Below are positions 45,818 to 60,374 of a stretch of DNA of 64,000 bases, piece by piece. Positions within the stretch are counted from its first letter, which is position 1, and each line of letters opens with the position of its first letter. The translations under genes and the position numbers were made by a program. This DNA comes from Pelomyxa schiedti (Eukaryota > Protista > Evosea), in assembly GCA_020536535.1 (NCBI GenBank), contig JAHLWZ010000852.1:10367-74366 (forward strand). The letters run 5' to 3'. The notes under the pieces are model-generated. The model was not told the origin of the DNA, did not search any database, and saw only the letters and a program-made list of their open reading frames with translations.

Positions 45818-46005
45818 CTTGCCCTTGACGTTCTTGTAATTTTATGATTTGGGCCGGTCTGATTTCTGTGAACTTCCTTCCTCAAGTCTGGAAGCCCACA
45901 ACCTCGGAAACGGTCCCGCCTTTGCCACCAAGGACACTCAGGAATATTCAAAATCATCAAAAAGTCTTTCTACAAAACTTCATTTGATGGAATGGTTCAC
46001 CTTCC

Positions 46006-46889
46006 TCAAACCAAGCCAAGTGATGAGTGGACACTCAGGACTCGACGACAGAGCTCTGTGAAGGCTAGACTTACATTGTCACCTGTCAGAGCACTGCACC
46101 TTTTGAATAGCAGGATCCCTTCTTTTTGCAGAAATACATTGACTTCTTCATCGCTTGTGCCATCTCTGTTCAAGTCGGTTTTGTTTGCCACAATCATTGG
46201 AACTATCCTTTTTGGAGCATGTTCTTTCATCATTTTATACCAGTCCTTCGCCTGATCAAAGGATTCCTGAATCTAAGTTAGCAAGAAAAAATACCAAAAA
46301 TTAACTTGAACCTTCTCCGTTGTGTCATAAACTACAGAAAAATATCCGGCAAATGTGAGTAGTTAACTCATGTTAGAGTAGAGAGGGAACGCACCAAGCA
46401 TAACGCCATGAGCACCTTTGGAACATTTTAATGTTAAACAGTTAGTGATGGAATACCTCTGAAGTAACTTGGGACCAATGAATGGTACCTTTCTGTTTGG
46501 CTTTAATAAGGGTGATTAATGCAAGCTGCTTAACCTTGGCCGGCAGTGTCCCATATCTACATTTTGTGAGTTGGCAAAACGAAACAAATGTGCTGTACAC
46601 TCAATTTCCGGTTCACACCATCGATCTGGAAGTCTGTCAACTCAAATGAATTTCTGGAAGGTGAATTTGTATGCGTTACGAGTCTAAAGGTGAGAACTTG
46701 AACACACGCAACAGTTACAGGGGTGGCAGTGGTGAAGGAGTTTTGGGTCAACCGATGCAAGAGAGATGATTTCCCCCCACCCGAAGGCCCCAGCATTACA
46801 ATTCTAATTGAGTCTTGTGGACTTCGTGAAGTTATCAGCGGCCGCGGCGGGGCCGCAGCAGAAGTACGGCCACACCCTCCGTTTCCCAT
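46006..46889 (-). CDS. Rab5/21/22-group-like small GTPase, N-terminal MGNGGC, no C-terminal Cys
   Basis: GPSGGGKS, WDTAGQ, ERYHSLVPSYFRGA, VYD, NKTD, SAL. Ends ..VHSSLGLV*. Confidence 0.88.
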
Positions 46890-46980
46890 TTCAGTTTTTT
46901 CAAAAAGAATGGTGGTGCAGTTCGGGGAAGAGAATCAACAATTTGCCCAATTTGGTGGAAAAACCAAAAACACAAGGAGA
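46890..46980. promoter_or_regulatory. Putative bidirectional promoter between Rab and VPS9 genes
   Basis: Only 91 bp separate the two divergent ATGs (46889 on -, 46981 on +). Confidence 0.55.
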
Positions 46981-48553
46981 ATGGGAAACGACAACAGCAT
47001 CGCCATAGACAATACCACTACCTATGCGCTCCATGTCATCATCATGCAAGTGGGACCCTTGCTTGACGCCATTGTCCCCAAGGAAAGCATGCTGCGAATC
47101 GACTGCAAGGCTCGTGTTTTGTAAGTGCACAACAACCATATTTCCCGCAAGCTCTTTTCCACGGCACTAAAAGCACACACGCGCAGCTTCACCGTTGCAG
47201 TGTCCAAGGCCCCAGCGGACCCCACGCCCGTCAGAATAACCAACTGGGACGTCGCCAAGCCCATCGTCCTGGTGACCTCTGGCACCGTCCTAGCCGCCGC
47301 CACTGGCTGTGTCCTCCTGTCCCCCCTCAGGGTCACAGTAGGTTGCGGGGCTGCGGTGCTCGGCCTGGGCGTCACCTCCGCAGCGGCGACCACCTGCGCA
47401 GTGAACGCGAGGCTGGCGCGCCGCGACTTTGGCTGCATGTCGGCAAACTGCAGCCTTCTGGCCGGGTACATGAACCAGGAGGAGTGGAACGATGCGAGAG
47501 AGCTGCAAGAGGCTTTCGTATCTAGTGCGGGAAAAACTATGTTCCGTGTGGGGGCGAAGACTAAAGTTCACCTCCCTAGATTGTCAGCCCAACACTTCGT
47601 GGGAGGATCTTAATCACCATCTTGTCCATTTGGATGCCATTTTCAAAGCCAAAGGCATAGAGCAAGTAAGCAAATCTCTCGGTGCTGTCAGTAACAACAA
47701 CTGTAGAGTGAAATCGATGAACTTATGAGAGAAGTGCAGTATCACTTCTTCGATTCTTGTTACGACATACTTGTTATTCCTGATGTAGCCAAATTCCCAG
47801 AGAAAAAACCCACAATACACAGGGGGATGATGATAATTTCAGAGTCGCGGTGAGAAATGGAAAAGATAAAGCTCTTCTTAGTGTTTCTGATGATTCGTGT
47901 ACCCCCGCTGTTCCTCCTGTTTGAAATGACTTTTGTTACCCGAAAATGCAGGGGACTACCTACAGGAATTCACACGAGAACTTGAAGCAATCTCAAAAGC
48001 TCGGAGCCCTCATATGATTCTAAGATGTGTTGAGAACGCGGAATCAGTACTGGCCGGCTATTGGAGAAAATTCAAAAGCCCAACAGAACCCACCCCACCG
48101 GAAGGTCCGATGCTGTAATTGCCCCAAGTCTAATTCTTGTTTTCTTTAGCTCTAGCAGAATGGATGGAACTTGGCTTATATCAGGCGAATATACTGAATA
48201 TGCACTCTATCCTTAACTACCTTGCTCGTTTTCAGGAAGCCCTTCCGGACCACTTGTATGCCAATCAATCATCCCGTACAACTGATCTTTAAAAAGGCAA
48301 TATCTGTATCGAACCCTCGCAGGAATGGTGGGGGTCATCGAACGTGTGTTTCCCAGTTTACCGACACAAAAACTAAATAGGGCACCAAAAAGAAAGGGCA
48401 ACAGGAGGAAGGTCATACAAATACCTTGGCATTGGGACGCGGCCCTGTTATGCAACCAAGTATGGTGTTTATGCCAATGGGAAGACCACTGTACATGTGG
48501 AAGAAGATGTCAATGGTTTCTTGGTGTTACGAACTTCCCATGATGTATCTTGA
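46981..48553 (+). CDS. Divergent VPS9-domain protein with MGNxxS start and hydrophobic segment
   Basis: ELEAISKARSPHMILRCV; PPE|ALAEWMELGLYQANILNMHSILNYLARF aligns without gaps to the VPS9 sADdfLP..iy...kAnp..l.Sni.Yi.rF block; YLYRTL..MV..IE. Confidence 0.6.
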
Positions 48554-48870
48554 TTGTATTATAAACCATTGTTTGGTTGGAAGAGGAAACCAACAACTTG
48601 TTACAAAAAAAAAAAAAAAAAAAAAAAAGGAATAGTTTGGGCATTTGTGAAGAGTCCTCTTCTCCAGAAAAGTGCTGGTATTACATGATTTGTTGTGTTG
48701 TTGTTATTTCAATAGGATCAGGAGGCTTCTTATTTGTGGTGGGGTAGTAATTCACCCACGATTGCCATCTCTAGCAGTCCTGCCAATGCACAGAGCCACC
48801 TTTCCTGAGTGACTTTGAGTGGTAGGCCCAATTTTATTATAGGGATCATACAAGCTACAACTCCTTGATT

Positions 48871-49752
48871 TCAAACTGAGGCAAGAGATGGATTCACAAT
48901 GAGGACTTGACGACAGAGCTCTGTGAACGCTTCTGTAACATTATCGCCTCTCTGAGCACTGCACCTTTCAAAAAGCGGGTGGCCTACACTGTGAAGGAAT
49001 TCATCGACCTCCTCGGGAGATGTGGCATCATTGTTCAGGTCAATTTTATTGGCCACAATCATTACAGTGATAGTATCTGGAGCATTTTCCATCAATTCGG
49101 CATACCATTCCTTCATCCTTAGAAAGGATTTCCTGTCTGTCGTGTCATACACTGTTGAAAAAGTTTAAAAAAACATTTCAATGAGAAGTGGGTAGGAAAC
49201 GCACCAATCATCGCTCCATGAGCCCCTTTTCAAAATAAGTTACTGGAAGAAGAATTAGGGGTACCTCTGTAGTATAGATGCGTCATAGCATGGAAGATTT
49301 CTGTTTGTAATTGTAAGGGGGTAATTATTCTATTCAGGAGAACCTTGGCCTGCAGTGTCCCAAATCTACACTTTGTGGGTAAACCAAAAAAATCAGATGG
49401 AGGGTGTACAGTCAATTTGGCTTCCTTCCCGTCTATAGGGAATCGTTTCGACTCCAAGTTAACCCTACTCAGAGAGAAGAATTCGTTATGGTATGTTCTC
49501 TGAGAGAATTTGTACACACCCAACAGTTGCCACAGTATTGTTGTTAAAGGTTTTTTTGACAAACTGCACCAAGAGAGATGTTTTTCCACCTCCTGAATGG
49601 CCCACCATGACAAGTCTAATTGGAGTTGGTCCCACAGGTGGGGGTGCCTTTGGGTAATTTCTCACCGACAGTGATGGTGATGATGGTGTCACTTGGGAAG
49701 CAGCGGTAGAAGAACTTGAACCATTCTTGTTTTTTGAACCGCAACCCCCCAT
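48871..49752 (-). CDS. Rab5/21/22-group-like small GTPase paralog, N-terminal MGGCGS, no C-terminal Cys
   Basis: GHSGGGKT, WDTAGQ, EIFHAMTHLYYRGA, YDTT, NKID, SAQ. Ends ..VNPSLASV*. Shares intron layout and 3' DNA similarity with the gene at 46006-46889. Confidence 0.88.
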
Positions 49753-49941
49753 TTCTGTTTTGGAATTTTTAGTGCGCCCGCCTTGGGTGACTTGGTCCGC
49801 CCTCTGTTGGTGACAATTTGAAGGAATTGAATTCAAACCAACTTGAAGCCGCTTTCGGCGACCACCTTGTTTTTGTCACAGAGGTGCTCTCAGGTTACAA
49901 TTGTTTCCTGCTGTTCACAGGCAAGACTTTTTTTTTTTTTA

Positions 49942-52166
49942 TTACAAATCTCTGCTGGCCAAGGGGTCTGTTGGTGGGAGGAGGTAATTTGACCACCAGG
50001 GTGTGGGATCCTCAAGAACTGACATCCATTGATGGAGCTCAGTTTCGTTCTCTTTTTGTTGATTAGTTTTAAGACTTATCTGTGGAAACACACCAACGTA
50101 AAATGCTGATTCTGCAGTCACTGTGTGGATTGTGAACTGGCACGGTTTAGCATCTTGGTTCTGGTTGTCGAATTGAATTCAATTGAAATGCCAGTGAGAT
50201 TTACCTTGTCCCTTGTGATGAAGTGGTCTGTGAGTTGAAGTATACCACTAGGTGCTGCATCCTGCAGAATAAAAGAACACCTTGGGATTTATTCTTGCGG
50301 GGCTAGGGACTAAAATAAAAAAGAAAGTACCGTGTCTGTCTTGAAAATGAACAAGAAGTTGTCCTTCAATACACAATACTTTTTGCTCCACAGTCCAAGC
50401 AGTGCTGCTGTATACAGAAGTTAGGAAAAGAAACATAGTTGGGTCACTTGCCTTGCTTCATCATGAAACCACTTCGGGTGGCTTTCCGAGTGAGTCGTGG
50501 AGCATCTGTCTTTGAATAAACAGAGGAAGCCAAATGCGTGGCATCTGTATAAGTTATTCACTTAACGTGTTGTAATGCACAAATAAAACACACCAACAGT
50601 TTTTGTAACTGAATCCAGAATCTTTTTAAATTTCTTTGTATTCCTCCGGTGAACGGCTTCTTTTTCTACCTTCTCTTCTTCTTCTTTTCTTTTTGTTTCA
50701 CTCCTTTCTTCCATGACTTGTTGAATTTGGCTCTTTTTTTTAACTGTGAAAAGGCATCAGCAAGGAAAAAGAGTTGGGAGGTTGACCTATTTCCGTTTTT
50801 TGCTTTGAGAGTAAACCTAAGAACCTTGTTGCAGCCTCTTTAGCCAAAGCTGTTGTGGTGTCAATTGGTGTCGATGTGGCACTAGTACTTGTGGAGCTTG
50901 ACTCGCGTAGATGAGCAGGCTTTGGTGGCACTGGTGGGGGTCGAGTTGGGGGTGGAGGTCCAGCAGAAAATGGATCCACAAAAAAGGGATTATCCTCCTC
51001 AAGTGTTGATGTGGGCGTTGCTTCAGTTCCAGGTGCATCAAATGGAGAGGAAGGTTGAGAAAATGGATCATCTGTTGTTGGTTGAGGTGGAGTCACAGTC
51101 GGCGTTTCCAATTCGAAGTCCAACCCATCTGGATTTGTAACTACTGAAAGTTTATGTATTGTGACGCCAATAGTGAATGGGTTCTAAACTCCTTGAGAGT
51201 AAAACGCGATAAAAAAAAAGTGTACATGAGGATCAGATGTATTATCACGATAAACTAATTTCACATCATTCATAAAAAGTTCAAAATTATGCACAATATG
51301 AGATACAAGTCTCTGAGGAAGTGCTTGCTCTCCGGGGTTTACACCTGTGAGTATTGTATTTAAGTGAGTTGGGTTATTTGCCTTGGGTATTGGTTTCTAG
51401 TTATTACTCAAAAATAACCGGAATTCGGTAGTTTTATTGGCCCTACAGCAGCTATTCCAGTCCAAGCTCTAATTTCCTTCAGGATATCCTCTTTTCCTGA
51501 TGCATCAGCAGAGCTTGAGCTTCCCCCATCCGATGATGGTGGAGCCACATACTGTTGGAATTGTAAACAAATAAACAAAAAAAAAAAAGTTGCATTGGTA
51601 AACAGTGCCACAAGTCCCTCCATGTAATACAGAGTTGGTTAAAACCAAACCTCAGGATTCGGCTCCACAACCAACAAAACGTCATCAATCCTTGCAATTG
51701 TGGGAGTCCCCGAATTGCTCACAGCCGGAGTCGTAGCTCCCAAGTTGGTGGCCGATGATGACGATGACGTCGACGACGACGAAGCCAATGAGGAAGCTGA
51801 AGGAGGTGCAGGTGCATTTTTCTTCATCTTCTGGGCGTGAACTAGGGTATTGACAGGGATTCTGAGCCTCAGTCTCCCAAGTTTTCCCCTCACGACTCTC
51901 ACGGGTGCATTTGTTGTTGGTGGTGCTGATGGCTGTGGTGGTGTTGCCGCCGTCCCATAACTGGAAGTTGCACTAGTCGCGGAGCCGCTACTGCTTCCGC
52001 CTCCGCCGCCAAAGTGCTTCTCGATGGCGCCGGGGCGCAGTTCCAAGTTGGACACGTCGACTTCGCCACGTGTGAGCCCAAAGTGGATGTCGTCCTTTCC
52101 AAGGTCGGAAATGTAATCACTCAGGAACCGAAACACTAATAACCGCACCACCTGCTCTATCAACAT
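49942..52166 (-). CDS. Short Chorein_N (VPS13/ATG2 N-terminal) + PH-like domain protein
   Basis: FLSDYISDL....I.FGL..GEV.V.NLEL...A..., VVRG.LG.LRLRIP, PTIARIDDVLLVV, IVHNFEL.M.DV.L.Y.D, GVTI..L.V. C-terminal FTIHT.....FY...ENETELHQWM..L. Confidence 0.7.
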
Positions 52167-52342
52167 CCTCCTTATTTGAGCGTTTGTTTTTTGATTTCGA
52201 ATTTTTGGAGAATTGTGGCAAAATTTTGTTTGATTCCTTTTGGGTTTTGTATGGTTACATACAGGGTGCACTGGGCATTGTTATATGGTACAAATGACCG
52301 GAAACATGGGGCGGTGATGTGGAATATACAAATGTTGCTGTA

Positions 52343-55300
52343 TTAGGACTGGGGAAGGAACAGAGCAACCGCCGCGATTGTGGTGGATGTTAGGTAATAG
52401 TCATGCTCACAGGAATCAGGGCCGGATGATAACCTTTGTGGGATTAGGCAGGAGACTGAAAAATGATGGTAGAGGGATATTACTCGGTCGCAATGAGCAG
52501 TTCGGTGAATAAAGAAGGTACGCAGGCCTGTGCAATTACATACTGAAACAGGCACGCCATAGTATCTCCGCAGACGGTCCGTTTGTTTGCTTTGTCCCCT
52601 TCCCATAGTTGCCCGATGAAGTTGAAAACAGCATGTGCAGTATTCGTGACACAAGCGGCTTTCTCCGTTGGGCATGCCTTAGACTTGATACTTTTAAAGA
52701 TATCAATAGCGGCTTGAAATGGCCTTAGTGTGGTTGTGACCCTCACAGTACTTGGACCCTGATTGGCTTTTTTGTATCCAATGCTACTTGGTAGAAGGCA
52801 CATACCAACCAAAATTCTGGTTCCACACCAAAATCGGAGGGTGTAGATGATTTATACCGAGCCCACAGTGCCTCGGCCGCTTTGTCAGCTTCAATACATC
52901 TCGTTTTTTGTTTCACAAATGGTAGAACTTGCCCCTGTTGAGAGGATCAATTCAGGACTGTTGATTCTCTTTCGTAATTTACCTTGCACCATGTGAAAAT
53001 TTCTGTGCTCGATCTCACCAAGAGTTCGGCACGTATTATTTCGGAAATCAAATCCTCAGAAACGGCATCACCAACGGAAAGTTGGCGTATGCACTGGTCA
53101 TAGATAGTTTCTAGTACTAAATGGGCAACAGGAAAAAACTCTCAGTACTTACCGGTAGTGGTGAATAGTTTAGTTTTTAGCGATTTCATGTCTGCTAGCA
53201 TTCTTATTGAATCGGAAAATTCTTTGGCAACCATTTCAACAGGTTTACTGCTAAAGGAAATTGAGATTTATCGGAAAAAGTGGTGGGTATACCTAAAAAG
53301 TTCTTGTATGGATACGGCAAGTCTTGTACAGTACAGGTGATGAGTAGCAATGCTTGAATTGTTGAAAAAAAGGCGCATACTCATGCAACTTACCCGGATA
53401 ATAACCGTGCTTCCACGTAACAGTCTTGTGCCTTTTGCTCCAGTTCAGAAAAGGAGAGGTGCGGAAGGAGTATCAGTTCAGCCATCGGCTTATTTTTTTC
53501 GGGGAAATCGGGGATAGTTATAGTCCCACTTTGGAAGCTAATGGACTGCATGAGCTATCACCACGTATTTTAAGTGACATACTATTTGAGTTCTGCTGCA
53601 AGACTGTAAATGAGAGCGTATCGCTCCAAACTCATCAGAGAATATGACTTATATTCTAAACAAGTAGTGTAATACTTGCTAATTGGGGGTACACAGCAAT
53701 CAGTGAAATCGGAGATATTTGGGTAAGTATTCTCGTCACCAGGAAGTGTATGTCTCCACAGTTTATTGAGATTCTGTGACAAGTTTGGTGGCGCAGAGGC
53801 AAAAGAATACCTCTCTATCCAGATTTCTTGTGAAAGCTTTGGAATTGACGAGCGGCGCCAAAATAGGAGATCGAAAGGCTGATGCTATGGAGCATGCAGC
53901 TTGGTGGTTGTTTAATTTGATAAACATTAAGCCAAGCTCGATACAAGCCTATATGCTCAATGAATGGGAAATAGACTCTTCCAAACTTTTACCTCAATGG
54001 TTTCCTTTTGCTCATCACGATCTGATGTTAGAACTTGAGTTATTGTCCACAGTTCTTCTGCTTCAATTCTCATTTCCAATTCTTGTCTTTCCGTTGAGTG
54101 TTCCTAATGGATTCCTTTCATCATTAATTAAATACCGCACAAAAAATACCACACCATAACAACAGAACGAGGATTTTTAGCAACTCTGCGATAGAGTAAC
54201 CAGTCTACATATGTCCATTTGGAGGCAATACTGTATAGAGAACTTGCTAGAACTTCAGGGATCTTCTTCCACTTTATTTGATTGACTCGGTCAATAGTTT
54301 CAGGTGGGCCGCTTATGCTGGCATTAATGGGTCTCGAGTTAAGGTCTCCATCTCCATTCCTGCTTCGGGAAAGGCTATCTTCTATTGCATGTATATTGAA
54401 GTGCCTGCCAGTGACTTCATTGAGTACAAGAGCAACCTCACTTGTATTCTCAGGAGACATAAAATCACCTTTTTGGAAGCGTTACACATTCACAATGAAA
54501 ACAAGCGCTCTACCTGGTATCTGGCTGATCCATTCATTCAGAAAACATAGCATCCATTCTACTTTGGGGGGGTCCCCTGTTTTTGCAACACAGAAGCACC
54601 ACTTCAAGAAAGTTGATAATGTTGCCTCGGGATGTTCAACAGGCTGCATAATAACTAAACCAACCATATGTTGGGGTTGTAGCTCAGTACTCTCAATGGC
54701 ACTGCTCTGTGTTAGAAAGGAACAAAACTGGCACTGTAATATTTGCACACGATGTGAGAACGGTGATAAGTGCAGTTTCGTCACTTTGGGGAGAATGTAT
54801 GTTTCCTGGTATCACCTCTACACCAGCAAGAACATGGTCCCGGAATCTTTCTGGAATGAGGCCTTGTTCCACAACGGCAGAGACGTCAGCAATTAGCTTT
54901 TCTGTTGATACATTGCACGTAGCTGGTAGTGTGGAATGGCTGTTGCCTTTGGGGGAGCTGGAAATACTCTGTGGTACAGAGGTGTTTGCACTCTCCGATG
55001 CACTGGAGTTCAGTATCTCTCTATTCTCCTTGAGAAAATTTGCTACACTGATCTTGACACAATCCAAGAGGTTATTCACAAGCGGCAGGTTGGCCACCAC
55101 ATCACCGATTCGGAACCCTATAGCTGAAGAGGAGCTAACAAGTAACTCCTGACATCTCTTTATTATAGTAGCCCAGAGAAGGCATACAGCTATAATGTGG
55201 ACTACTGGAGATACCGCTACAATCTCTGTCTGTTGGGGATATATCCACTGAAAGAGTTAGGGGAAACCGAAAGAACATTTGACATACAGAACCGTTCTCT

Positions 55301-58300
55301 CTAGAAAGCAGTTCGTTTTGTCTCGATGTCTTTATTCCAAACAGTTTTGAAATTTGAATCATATGCTGAGAAACCCGTGATTCAACTTGACTTAAATTCA
55401 CCACTCCAATCTGTATTTCGGAGTCATTTCCCTTTGAACTTGTACGTATAACACAAACCGATGGTATCAAACTGATTATAGAAGAAACTGCCTGTGAGTA
55501 GGTTTTTCGAATATCGGTTAGTCTTTGTAGTTTTAAGCCACTCTTAACGACATCAGGAAGGATGAGGATTGTTGCCTCCTTCAGTGCGGAAATATTGTAT
55601 GGAGGAACACTTTCCGATGTGGGTCCACATTTGTTGCAATGGAACAGCCAAGGGCCACATCCAACGTTCGGAGGACAACACATTCTCGTAGTTTTACAGC
55701 TGTTTATATGTTAGAAACAGAAGTCTTTGTAAGATACATACTTTGGGCACAAAAACACTGTGGAAACAAAGTTGAGATCGGGAACGGCATTGGTGTACAC
55801 AACTGACAAGAAAAATTTTCTCGTTTCATCACTCTCGATGGTTCCCCTTAAAATGTTGCCAGCTGCATTTGGGATAAACTTATTCACAACTAAAAGTACT
55901 GGTATCCTTGTCCCATTGGGTCGGATGAGGAGCCTTTCACATGGATCGAGAACAGATTTAGGGACAATTCTGTTATCCGCTGCTGATATTACCCACCATA
56001 CCTACATAGATGTTAGATAACCTCCAGGTGATGGAGGAAGTTACCATGTGAATTTCTTCTGGAGGATTTTGGTGGGATGCCAGATCAAAAAGTTGCTTTA
56101 GAATAATGGGGAGCTCAGCAGAAGAGTTCCCTTCAGTTCCTGGTGACTCATACACCACAAGATTGGAATCAATAATATGCCTTGAGGGTTCTTTGGTCAC
56201 TGGTTTTCCCACTCCTGTCCTGAAAAATATAATTGAAGGAGTTAGGAGACAAAAGATTTGTGTATGTACGTTGAACTCACAAAGCAACTTCACGCTGGGC
56301 AACAGCATTAATAAGTGAACTCTTACCAGAACCAGTATTGCCTATAACAGCTATAACGGCAGCAAAACATTGCGTTCTATGAGGAATTAGAGTCACCCCT
56401 TTATGCGTTAACACACTCGTGAAGGGATTTTCTGAAATGAGCTTCTTGTTCCAAAACGAGACTCAACGCCCATGAAGGGTGGTGTGTCCTTTCAGAGGGG
56501 ATGTGAGTTGGTTGGGGAGCGGGGTTGGAAGCGACTGCCGAGGCAATTTTACATTGCAGTTGTGCTGCTTCTGTAAGTCTTTTCTATATCCTTGTTAGTG
56601 GAGAGGTAGACGATATGACGTTGCCTGCCTCTTCAAGAGTTTCTTTGTAGTTTGGGCGAATTTTCAGGCTGGCGTCAAAACATAAGAGAGCCTCATCATA
56701 TTTTTTCAACAAACTCAGAGCGAGTCCTTTTTCGTGCAATATATCTGGGTCATTTTGTCTGGATTCAAGCGCTATGTCTAGACACTGTAGGGCTTCATCA
56801 TATTGATTGAGTAAACGCAAGGATACAGCTTTTTTTCGTAGTGTAAATGGATTGTGATGGCTGCATCTAAGAGCTGCCTCAAACCATGGAAGTGATTCTG
56901 TGTACTTTCCTGCCAAGGCAAGTGAGCAACCAGTGTCATGAGCGTGATTGGTTCCAAGAAGTGTTCTTGCCTTAGGTGGGGAAGGTGGCTCTAGAGATAC
57001 ACTTTGCCACATAGAATTCGCCTCTGTGCACTTGCCACACAACCACAACTCAGATGCTTTGCAAATTAAGAGCTCTGGTTCTTGTGTCCCCGAAAGTGAC
57101 AGAGCACTGTCAAAGATTGTTGCAGCTGCTTCGTGCTTTTTAAGATCGCGCAATGCGAGACCGCGTGCTGCCTGTATTCGAGGATCTCCAGCAGCCGGTA
57201 GTGAATCAAGGCACAACAATGCTTCATCTGGCCTTGAAAGTATTCTGAGAATTGCCGACTTGGCCAATCTGACATCGACGCTCTGCGGCAAGTCAAGTTT
57301 GTCTTTGCTCAATAGTAGATCCTGGCACTGCAAAGCTTCCTCAAGTCTATGCTGCGATACAAGGAGAGAACATTCATTCAGCACTTCACTAATAAATCCA
57401 CGTGTGGTGGCATCAAATGCTGGAGGCGGCGCAACAGGAGAGAAAGTGAGTGCATCAGTGTAACTGGGGGCTTCCACGTCATAGACCAACTTATTTCCTC
57501 TGAGTCCAATAAAAAGTGTATTATTTGTGCTTCTAAGAGTGAGTCCCTTTTTAGAGAGTGGGAACTCACCATAGGAAAAAGCGACTCGATGCACCTGCAT
57601 ACGTTGCTCTGAGTTGATCTTGTTCTTTTGGTGAGGAATTGGAACAGGTGGGATAAGGTGATCCTTTAGGAAGTTTCAACCATAATTTATTGCTCCTGTT
57701 GCAGAAAAGATAAATCAATTCATCTAACAAAGACTAAAGTTATACCCTCTTAAAGCAATAAACATTTTGCCTTGAGTGTCTTTCTTCTCTGGCTTTATTT
57801 TCACAGTAACAAACCATAATTCTCCCGCCCCTGTGGTAGAAGCAAGAGTAATATTTCCCTTTGATGCCATCCCACAGCATAAGAAATTTTTGTTGAAAAC
57901 TTGAATCAAGTAGTAGCCAGTCACAATAGTGGTCGTTTCTACTGTGCAAGTAGGCAGGGTAGAATGTTTTGGAGGCAAAGTTGGTGCAACAGATTGTGTA
58001 AGTTTTAGTGGTGTCGAAGTAGGTGGGGTTGGTTGAGAGTCCAAGGGGGAAGAAGAGGGAACTTGTATCTTTTTATGGTTGAAGATGCTGGAATTGCAGT
58101 GACGTGAAATAAAGGACACTGAAGAAGATATTGTCGACATAGCACGACCACGGCAAGGGACGATTTTATTACTAGGGTCATTGTTGTCAACCTTTAAAAA
58201 AGGTGGTGCAGTTGTTTTGGTCGGCTGTTGAAATCCCATTTCCTGCTAGGCTTTAAGAACTTACTGACAACATTGTAGATGTGACCTCTTTCAAAAGGCA

Positions 58301-59059
58301 ACCTTCTTCAAATAGGACTAAACGGTGATTCGATGTCCGCCAGTGGCCCTTTGCTGCATTAACAAGCTCCAATACAAAGAGGTCCCCATCCAGCTTGTGA
58401 AAATAAACATCTGTAGCCAAGTTACAGCTCCAGAAAAATTAAAAATGTACACAACCTGTCCCATCTTCACAGTAGTCATAAAGAGCAAAGAGAGACAAAG
58501 GTGACATTGGAGAGACTTGAGAGAATTTGGAATGGCACAGTTTTGACAGATCCGAAACTTTGGATGAAGAATCCACCAAGAAGGTCTTGAAGAAAGACTG
58601 CACGGTAGCAACTCCCGAGTGCAAGCTGGATTCACCAAGAGTACCAGTCTCAGATCTTGTGTTGGTAGCAACGACTACCGCAACAGATTCAGCCAAAGGG
58701 TGCGTTGCTACTGGAGTGCTGTGGAGCACGTTCTCCCCACCACCACTTTGACGCGTAGTAGTCGCAATTTCGGGGGCCTTATCACTGCTGCTACTGCTGC
58801 TGATACTGATACGCGACGTGACGTCGCAGTTTACTACAGGAGTGTCCAGTAAAGTATCGCTTTCGCCGAGATCTGCACCGCACTTTGTAGGCGCGGCAGT
58901 AGCAATAGCAGTGGCAGTGGTTTGTTTCGCGGCGTACACCACGTACACCTCTACATCATCCTGCTGAATCAGATCTGCGGTTTGAATCGCGGGGCTGTCA
59001 CCGGCACCCCCGGGGGCGCCGATTGAAGTCGCCGGCTCGCGTTCGCCCCCGCCGCTCAT
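52343..59059 (-). CDS. Giant multidomain protein: RA-like + fascin/beta-trefoil-like + TPRs + P-loop GTPase + VPS9
   Basis: RA-like: KTFLVDSSSKVSDL..F.LY..KLDGD..VL...W. Trefoil-like: IALRGYN, LTLRSTN. TPRs: YDEALQCLD.AL.., YDEALLCFDASLKIRPN. GTPase: GNTGSGKSSLINA..TGVGKPVT..ESPG..VVNK. VPS9: AI..FKSI....CPTEKA.CV..CGDTMACLFQYVIAQA.VP.L..YYLT. Could be two genes. Confidence 0.7.
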
Positions 59060-59255
59060 CACCACGACCCCACTTGCGGCTATTTTGTTTGTTTTTGTGT
59101 GCTTTTGTGTACTTGCTTTGATCGATTCGGTCCGTGCGAAGGGATGTTCCCCGAAAATGCTGTTTTATGCATTTCGCCTGGCTGTTGTTTTGTTGGAACA
59201 TTGACAGAGACAAAAATGGTGGCTTAGGGCGCATCACCGGCTGAAGAACGGTACT

Positions 59256-60374
59256 TTAGGATTGAGATCTTGATGTGGCGGCAAAGTTCAGCAATACCTT
59301 GGCCAGTTTTGGGGTCAACGATGCTGTGTTGCGTTTTTTTGTTCTGAGTGAGGGGAAAAAAACGAAGAGGTGAAAGCACACAAATTCCGGAGGTATTTGG
59401 GGGTGGCCAGTTTCTGTTTCAACAAGTGAGATCTTACATTGACATTGTATTGGCCTACCTGTACGACCGACATCACTTGTGGGTGTGGGGCACAACCTTT
59501 CATGTTGCCTACAAAAATGTATTCACATCCGGCTGGACACAACCTGGAGTTATTTTGTGATCTTGTGCTTTCTTCCATGTTAATTCCAACCTCAACGCCT
59601 CTGTGAGCCAAACACTGAGAGCTTCAGCAGATCTCTCATCTCCTGTGTCATAAACAAGCAAGCACACACAGCAGGAACGGTATTGTAAATCTTTAATTTT
59701 GGTTCAGATGTAGAAAAAATCCTAACACACTGACCACTGCCATGCTAATTTTTAAAACAACGGAACGGATGTAAATACATACTAGTACAAAAATGAAAAC
59801 ATACAAATTTCCCGGGCAGGTCCCACTATTCTGTATTAGTTTGGATTTGAAAGAGGATGCGAACCAGGGCAACAGTGCTGTTAATGTCAGTAAGGTATCT
59901 CAACCTCTGGTTTTTTTCTGTTAATTCCAGTAATGCAACAGGAGGGTAGAAACCAGATCAGGTTTAGTCGCAGGTGAAGGTTCTTCAGGTAAATCTCCAG
60001 TCTGTGTATTTTTATTAATAAATACAGTGGTAAGAGTGTATCTGCGGACCAATAGCCGCCAGAACAGTGCCGTTTTCCCACAACACGAGCCTTGCTTTGG
60101 AGTCGGCCCAAACAAATATGACACAAAGCAACGACAAACAAAAAGAGCCAGCCATCCATCAATCATACATACCTCCAACAATGACCACTTTCACTTCTGC
60201 AGTTCGTGTTGGCAGCCCAATCTGTTTGACATCAGGGTCATCGCAGTCCAACTTAGGCTGAAGCAGGCTCAGTCCCACGGTACAAGGGACGACGGGTACG
60301 AAGGAAGAAGGGGGTGGTGATGGCGGATAGGGGGTCGCAATGCAACCTTGTGGAAATGTCGCTGTCTGCCCCAT
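59256..60374 (-). CDS. Divergent Ras-superfamily small GTPase, N-terminal MGQTAT
   Basis: Spliced KVVIVG-GSCCGKTAL, WDLPG, CLLVYD...S, IFVGNM. Ends ..SRSQS* with no CaaX. Confidence 0.65.

Follow-up and report, generated by a model that had tools for sequence, protein, structure and literature searches.

This report concerns a run of six genes in the genome of the protist Pelomyxa schiedti, and in particular two of them that are transcribed away from each other: a Rab-family GTPase gene, which we call RabA, and the plus-strand gene beside it, which we call the partner. The stretch of DNA that we analysed (the window) is 64,000 nucleotides long and corresponds to positions 10367-74366 of contig C852; positions given below without a contig name are positions in the window. 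The assembly was published as 52.4 Mb in 5337 scaffolds with 19,876 proteins (PMC8887013), and the sequence that we searched totals 52,367,397 bases in 5337 contigs. A first-pass annotation, made from the letters of the window, had described positions 46006-60374 as an operon-like endomembrane cluster of six consecutive genes: three small GTPases that are not prenylated, two genes with VPS9 exchange-factor domains and one with a Chorein_N domain. All six genes exist, and this observation is confirmed in part; the labels that did not stand as given are VPS9 for the plus-strand gene and RA for the largest gene.

The genes of the window are split into many small exons by GT..AG introns of 39-99 nt (the published genes of this species have 7.43 introns each; PMC8887013), so gene modelling was needed before each gene could be judged. 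For the splice joints we used RNA contigs from single-cell RNA-seq runs of one study, aligned to positions 46000-51990, and all four genes with RNA coverage (RabA, the partner, RabB and the Chorein_N-PH gene) proved to be spliced. Pfam searches were run exon by exon, while the joined, spliced models were used for local hidden Markov model (HMM) searches, hhalign and pairwise alignment. The gathering cut-offs are 21.6 bits for Ras (PF00071), 27 bits for VPS9 (PF02204) and 80 bits for the whole VPS13_N family. Two gene structures, that of the third GTPase of the cluster (GTPase3; in three frames) and that of a Rab on contig C241, were read by eye.

RabA (46006..46889, minus strand) has 7 exons and encodes a Rab-family GTPase of 198 amino acids (aa); RabB (48871..49752, minus strand) encodes another of 215 aa. 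Both assignments come from Pfam Ras matches on two exons each, all above the cut-off (44.7 and 22.3 bits for RabA, 58.2 and 30.5 bits for RabB), together with introns present in the RNA contigs. Three of the six RabA introns were seen in this way (46267-46311, 46493-46534 and 46557-46598), and all six RabB introns are present in a single RNA contig. RabB has a further intron in its 3' untranslated region (3'UTR) at 48805-48851. The motifs G1 to G5 are complete in both proteins (GxxGGGK(S/T), the switch-I Thr, WDTAGQE, NK(T/I)D and CSA(L/Q)), and Rab-type switch II and interswitch motifs are present. In the RabA model the motifs read GPSGGGKS, IWDTAGQE, NKTD and CSAL, and its switch II is ERYHSLVPSYFRGA. 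RabA and RabB are tandem paralogs with 53% identity, RabB being the additional copy. A homologue search with the N-terminal frame of RabB found no protein.

A switch II of Rab5-group type had been noted in both Rabs, and our searches do not support a Rab5-group identity. What we take to be a Rab5-like switch II (YHSL.P.Y.RGA) is found in RabA only. Searches of solved structures with the C-terminal exons gave RABA1a at 47 bits, Rab21 at 45, Rab11 at 44.5, Ypt51 at 42.6 and Rab5A at 40, and in this ranking Rab11, Rab21, Sec4, Rab1 and Rab5 are near-equal, separated by a few bits.

The partner gene (46981..48553, plus strand) lies between the two Rab genes. Our model of it has 9 exons and about 394 aa; the introns 47525-47579 and 47666-47706 are supported by RNA, and one exon junction within 47844-47951 is not fixed. 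RabA and the partner are head-to-head, with a spacer of 91 nt (46890..46980) between their start codons at 46889(-) and 46981(+).

The same arrangement is found a second time. Each of three different partner exons matches one other place in the 52 Mb, C241:20771-22518(+), which is the partner's sole paralog; it starts with MGNTNS and aligns to the window partner from end to end. Immediately beside it, at C241:19870-20721 on the minus strand, is a Rab gene (RabC; Ras 28.1 bits) that is the sole further close relative of RabA and RabB. The three Rabs form a family with 52-58% identity in the C-terminal exon, against at most 43% for the next Rabs; RabC is 52-54% identical to RabA and RabB in this last exon, starts with MGSCGSH and ends in ...IVKNNS, and its micro-exons are arranged in the same way. 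The C241 genes are also divergent, with 49 nt between start codons, and the two spacer sequences show no conservation.

Since the partner's one paralog and the one further close relative of these Rabs are themselves head-to-head, the pair has been duplicated as a unit, and both genes have been retained in both copies, on C852 and on C241. Outside the pair the neighbours differ. On C241 a PIP5K-type gene (C241:22589-23720, or L026:1969-3100, minus strand; PF01504, 54 and 52 bits) lies tail-to-tail with the partner, whereas the window pair has RabB and the Chorein gene as neighbours. It is therefore the two genes of the pair that were duplicated together and retained. Amino acid identity between the paralogous pairs is 44-74% (74% in the first exon of the partners and 67% in the last), and to judge from their sequences the two pairs are old paralogs. 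Both families are tiny, with three Rabs and two partners, and they occur only together. As a side observation, both pairs are near a gene related to phosphoinositides: the PIP5K-type gene on C241, and in the window a PH-domain protein two genes away. This may be a coincidence.

Comparing the two partners shows which parts of the protein are conserved. The window partner begins with MGNDNS and a conserved module, followed by a hydrophobic segment rich in Gly and Ala (aa 72-114), a weak VPS9-like core (aa 248-340) and a conserved C-terminal module of about 50 aa. The first exon (46981-47118 (+) and L023:2402-2539), in which the 74% identity is found, has the pattern MGN.NSIAIDN ... IMQVGPL.DAIVP; it is more strongly conserved than the VPS9-like core, a hint at a separate function. 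The C-terminal module (48398-48550 (+) and L026:1748-1897) reads YKY(L/I)GIGT, then KYGVYANGKTTVHV, then FLVL, and the 14 successive residues of KYGVYANGKTTVHV are identical between both partners. Neither of these terminal modules has a Pfam match. In both partners, 19-residue windows between residues 70 and 163 reach a Kyte-Doolittle hydropathy of 2.1-2.3, which suggests a membrane-embedded segment. We also looked up one partner exon in the ESM Atlas; it returned heme-oxygenase matches only, which we discarded as noise.

The first-pass annotation was right that the small GTPases are not of the prenylated kind: a CC, CXC or CAAX tail is missing in RabA, RabB and GTPase3, and the last 10 residues of RabA and of RabB contain no Cys. 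What had been overlooked is the N-terminal acylation motif that accompanies the loss of the tail. RabA starts with MGNGGCG (Cys6) and RabB with MGGCGSK (Cys4), and each of the three GTPases combines an MG... N-myristoylation motif and a Cys within 11 residues with the lack of a C-terminal Cys. A PROSITE-style N-myristoylation pattern matches RabA, RabB, RabC, GTPase3 and also both partners, and it does not match the other two genes of the cluster (the Chorein_N-PH gene and the giant gene described below). The membrane anchor of RabA and RabB thus seems to have shifted to the N-terminus, as in ARA6 and Plasmodium Rab5B.

Upstream of RabB on the minus strand is the Chorein_N-PH gene (49944..52166), which encodes a short VPS13-like protein of about 580 aa. 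The presence of a Chorein_N protein in the cluster is borne out by a match to VPS13_N positions 3-48 (E 3.9e-6, 25.3 bits); the score is below the 80-bit whole-family cut-off, as expected for a protein of about 580 aa that lacks the long rod. The PH domain is a C-terminal stretch that we recognised by eye in the joined, RNA-guided model, and the PH HMM had no match on single exons of the gene. We noted some irregularities here. An RNA-supported intron at 50408-50451 (-) is of the GC-AG type, a class that makes up 1.59% of the published introns (PMC8887013). The reading frame requires a 50-nt intron at 51397-51446 (-), and the RNA contig from run X1 is unspliced across 51226-51551, so this is either a retained intron in the X1 transcript or an error in our model; the loose end of an RNA contig at 51450 has no counterpart within the window. 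Between RNA and genome there are three differences, T>C at 48731 and at 51310 and, in the 3'UTR, a deletion of 2 nt at 49940; each occurs in one contig and may be a strain difference or an error.

The giant gene (52343..59059, minus strand) encodes an N-terminal extension, TPR repeats, a GTPase of the dynamin/MMR_HSR1 type, a predicted RasGEF-like middle part and a probable C-terminal VPS9 domain. It had been described as an RA/TPR/GTPase/VPS9 gene, and all but the RA domain, which we did not find in it, can be kept. Pfam matches TPR strongly and finds a P-loop of the dynamin/MMR_HSR1 type. The VPS9 exon scores 24.9 bits against the cut-off of 27, covers 2-70 of the 104 model positions and retains the GD Asp-finger motif. 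From 57072 to 52355 the gene is collinear with residues 8-1259 of P0002, a relative of 1260 aa in which TPR, MMR_HSR1, RasGEF and VPS9 are all above their cut-offs. The VPS9 scores of the paralogs are 36.3 bits for P0001 and 29.0 bits for P0002, and both probably come from the same genome. A homologue search with P0004 returned five VPS9 proteins and nothing else. The RasGEF-like segment at 53400-54800 (-) is proposed from the paralog P0002, and Pfam found no match on the giant gene's own exons there; if the segment is present, the giant protein would have two exchange-factor domains.

GTPase3 (59226..60374, minus strand) is a divergent Ras-like gene, and our exon model of it is provisional. 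The exon at 59512-59703 scores 15.2 bits for Ras (E 0.016), below the cut-off. The protein starts with MGQTATF, has Cys11 and an intact P-loop (GGSCCGKT), and ends in ...SSAGDAP without a Cys; by eye its G3 motif is degenerate (no DxxG or DTAGQ) and there is no clean NKxD. RabA and RabB did not match it in tblastn. The gene had been ended at 59887, and it extends to about 59226.

The VPS9 and Ras families are both large in this genome, and we therefore estimated how often their members should meet by chance. A PF02204 scan found at least 33 VPS9 loci. For the Ras family there are 1009 exon-level candidates, of which 150 were scored, and the DTAGQ codon pattern occurs at 165 sites or more, against 4 for the reversed control. 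With 19,876 genes, these figures give an estimate of 0.6-1.8 VPS9 genes expected by chance to have a Ras-like immediate neighbour. Some contigs returned the same family-scan scores: C842:47140-47535 and C862:47124-47519 at near-identical coordinates, C1130:7384-8004(+) and 9395-10015(-) at mirrored coordinates, and C1145:13483-13632(-) and C1173:2704-2853(+). Most of these are probably duplicated contigs or haplotigs, and one is probably an inverted repeat of a Ras gene, so the family counts in the assembly are perhaps slightly too high.

The window locus is the only one with a DTAGQ GTPase within 10 kb among the 24 VPS9 loci (of 33) that the listed DTAGQ sites cover, on contigs up to C852; the next nearest distances are 13-15 kb (C445, C636 and C751). 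A tblastn search with RabA and RabB in the 10 kb to the left of each of 20 other VPS9 loci gave no match, and right flanks were checked by the DTAGQ sites only. Paralogs of the giant gene's VPS9 exon are on C792, C1014 and C970, and those of GTPase3 are on C333 (two), C375, C1799 and C551, with no contig in common. Given no GTPase near the other checked VPS9 loci and paralogs that are unlinked, there is no general VPS9-GTPase linkage in this genome: the genome-wide test that had been proposed shows no enrichment, with one of 24 checked loci against 0.6-1.8 expected. The Rab/partner pair is beyond chance, and the six-gene set is not.

The description as operon-like does not hold either. The genes lie on both strands, each has separate spliced RNA contigs, and the Chorein_N-PH mRNA has its poly(A) site at 49904 (a contig ending in a plus-strand run of T), 152 nt before the RabB start. 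The idea of a six-gene module is likewise not supported, as the giant gene and GTPase3 have their paralogs on separate contigs and the C241 pair adjoins PIP5K. Of the proposed GTPase-GEF module (GEF, guanine nucleotide-exchange factor), what survives is the divergent pair of RabA and partner that recurs on C241, and the remaining genes drop out of it. A narrower GTPase-partner module of this kind is plausible. The Chorein_N-PH gene, the giant gene and GTPase3 are most likely plain neighbours in a genome where genes are densely packed and where VPS9 and Ras-like genes abound.

The reading that we favour, and we do so tentatively, is that the pair forms a two-gene unit in which a tail-less Rab with an N-terminal acylation motif is set head-to-head with a VPS9-like membrane partner that would be its dedicated regulator. 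RabA and the partner would be driven by a shared bidirectional promoter region in the spacer. A Rab without a tail would fall outside handling by Rab escort protein (REP) and GDP dissociation inhibitor (GDI), and would therefore have to stay on the membrane through its acyl chains, fixed there by a myristate and a reversible palmitate. The partner may be a dedicated nucleotide-exchange factor for the neighbouring Rab or another direct regulator of it; anchored in the same membrane and expressed from the same short promoter region, it would switch the Rab on locally. The duplication would have given two such units, with RabB as a further tandem copy of the Rab.

Several results weigh against this reading. 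Pfam matched no family on any partner exon, the PF02204 scan of the whole genome did not detect the gene, and local VPS9 HMMs (7 and 11 domains) gave the joined partner -0.7 to 1.8 bits, which is the level of shuffled sequences. In two metagenome scans, the best-conserved partner exons had no relative outside this genome. In the Asp-finger column the window partner has Glu (PEALAEW) and not Asp, in an alignment to VPS9 that is weak. The Rab subfamily is not settled, and phylogeny therefore does not point to a GEF of the VPS9 type. RabA is strongest in the RNA contigs of run X2 and the partner is found in run X1 only, with no obvious co-occurrence, and such contigs are not quantitative for expression. 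In addition, a segmental duplication would leave genes 50-90 nt apart linked even if selection played no part.

The first-pass annotation had counted two VPS9 genes. The giant gene's VPS9 exon is just below the cut-off and probably can stand; the plus-strand gene fails HMM search, an outcome that the annotation itself had named as refuting. We would still call the partner probably homologous to VPS9, and this judgement comes from profile comparison. When a profile of the two paralogs was aligned to 11 VPS9 domains with hhalign, query positions 248-340 matched template positions 15-114 in register with a score of 26.0 (P 0.0035). None of 100 column shuffles reached 26.0, and the highest gave 19.8; the hhalign probability is low, at 9%, and this counts among the points against. 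The C241 partner has Asp at the finger column (TDDLLEW) by hhalign and pairwise alignment, with the same weakness of the alignment to VPS9. Both partners have SP...L.C, (D/E)..LEW, N.(P/L)NMHSIL.Y..RF and Y..L...V..IE, a layout that resembles the VPS9 consensus. If the likeness were spurious, the pair could be coupled with the partner acting as a membrane receptor, effector, chaperone or acylation/targeting factor. That every VPS9 HMM test failed would fit such a role, as would the missing Asp in the window copy and the position of the best-conserved parts, the first 46 and the last 50 aa, outside VPS9 and outside any Pfam family. However, a match that spans the whole VPS9 domain in register and lies above all 100 shuffles, and a four-motif layout common to both partners, speak against it, and we consider it quite improbable.

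A more serious contender, although we still think it unlikely, is that the two genes were chance neighbours that were copied by one segmental duplication and never separated, without any functional coupling. The density of the genome (19,876 genes in 52.4 Mb) and the size of the families (at least 165 DTAGQ GTPases and at least 33 VPS9 loci, with the 0.6-1.8 chance neighbours estimated above) speak for such a start; with 49-91 nt between the start codons there is hardly any place for a breakpoint, and in the RNA contigs the two genes do not clearly occur together. Duplicates are usually lost independently of each other, though, and here both genes were retained in both copies despite a divergence to 44-74% identity. 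Chance also does not account well for families of three and two members that are found only together, or for the same unusual N-terminal anchor motif in both genes. Less probable than any of these is the original proposal of one co-regulated six-gene endomembrane module for a specialised vacuole, for example one that contains symbionts. All six products are indeed related to endomembranes and lie within 14.4 kb, P. schiedti is host to prokaryotic endosymbionts (PMC10579272), and two VPS9-type genes plus two DTAGQ GTPases in 15 kb would be expected only about 4e-4 times per genome under independent placement. That estimate leaves out the tandem duplication that produced RabA and RabB. The giant-gene and GTPase3 paralogs are never linked together or to Rabs, the C241 pair has PIP5K as a different neighbour, and the transcripts are separate and come from both strands, that of the Chorein gene being polyadenylated before RabB is reached. 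Our preferred reading of a Rab with its own regulator could be carried further, to a Rab cycle of Archamoebae that is independent of prenylation and GDI and has a private, rapidly evolving, VPS9-derived GEF, with the unit duplicated and specialised, possibly for endosymbiont vacuoles. We regard this extension as rather doubtful, slightly more so than the chance origin.

A genome that encodes hundreds of small GTPases and has over 30 VPS9 genes can be expected to contain a "trafficking cluster" by chance, and we believe that linkage carries weight only where it recurs between paralogs.

Rab5-type GTPases that are N-acylated and lack a tail are known. In plants ARA6 (RABF1) is such a protein; N-terminal myristoylation together with palmitoylation keeps it on the membrane, and it is activated by the VPS9-domain GEF VPS9a (PMC5947987, PMC3871812, PMC3398913). 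Like ARA6, the Pelomyxa Rabs have no C-terminal prenylation Cys and carry an N-terminal acylation motif, which is known here from sequence; unlike ARA6, which clearly belongs to the Rab5 clade, they are not placed in one subfamily. VPS9a is a canonical soluble VPS9 protein that also serves conventional RAB5, whereas the candidate regulator in Pelomyxa is highly divergent, has a myristoylation motif and a hydrophobic segment, and is encoded by a gene that adjoins the Rab. The Rab5B of Plasmodium falciparum is likewise tail-less, with N-terminal myristoylation and palmitoylation motifs (PMC3912013), so the anchor switch arose more than once. PfRab5B belongs to a different lineage and no linked regulator gene has been described for it; the tail-less Rabs of Pelomyxa probably have an independent origin. 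How such Rabs cycle without REP and GDI is poorly understood in plants and Plasmodium, and the two diverged Rab/partner copies provide natural cognate and non-cognate combinations with which binding and exchange could be tested.

The comparison with the Rabex-5/Vps9p family differs between the two VPS9-type genes of the window. The giant gene and its paralogs resemble this family in having a C-terminal VPS9 domain with the GD Asp-finger motif, and they depart from it in joining VPS9 to TPR, a dynamin/MMR_HSR1-type GTPase and a RasGEF-like part. The likeness of the partner gene is weak and in register; the family HMM failed on it, and one copy has Glu at the finger. In its gene arrangement the pair is like other eukaryotic bidirectional pairs, as it is divergent, has a very short spacer and has stayed together through duplication. 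Conserved head-to-head pairs, such as histone gene pairs, usually encode subunits of one complex. In the literature that we searched we found no account of a GTPase gene linked with the gene of its own candidate exchange factor. If our reading is correct, this would be an unusual eukaryotic case of linked, non-homologous partners, in which a switch and its activator are inherited as one unit.

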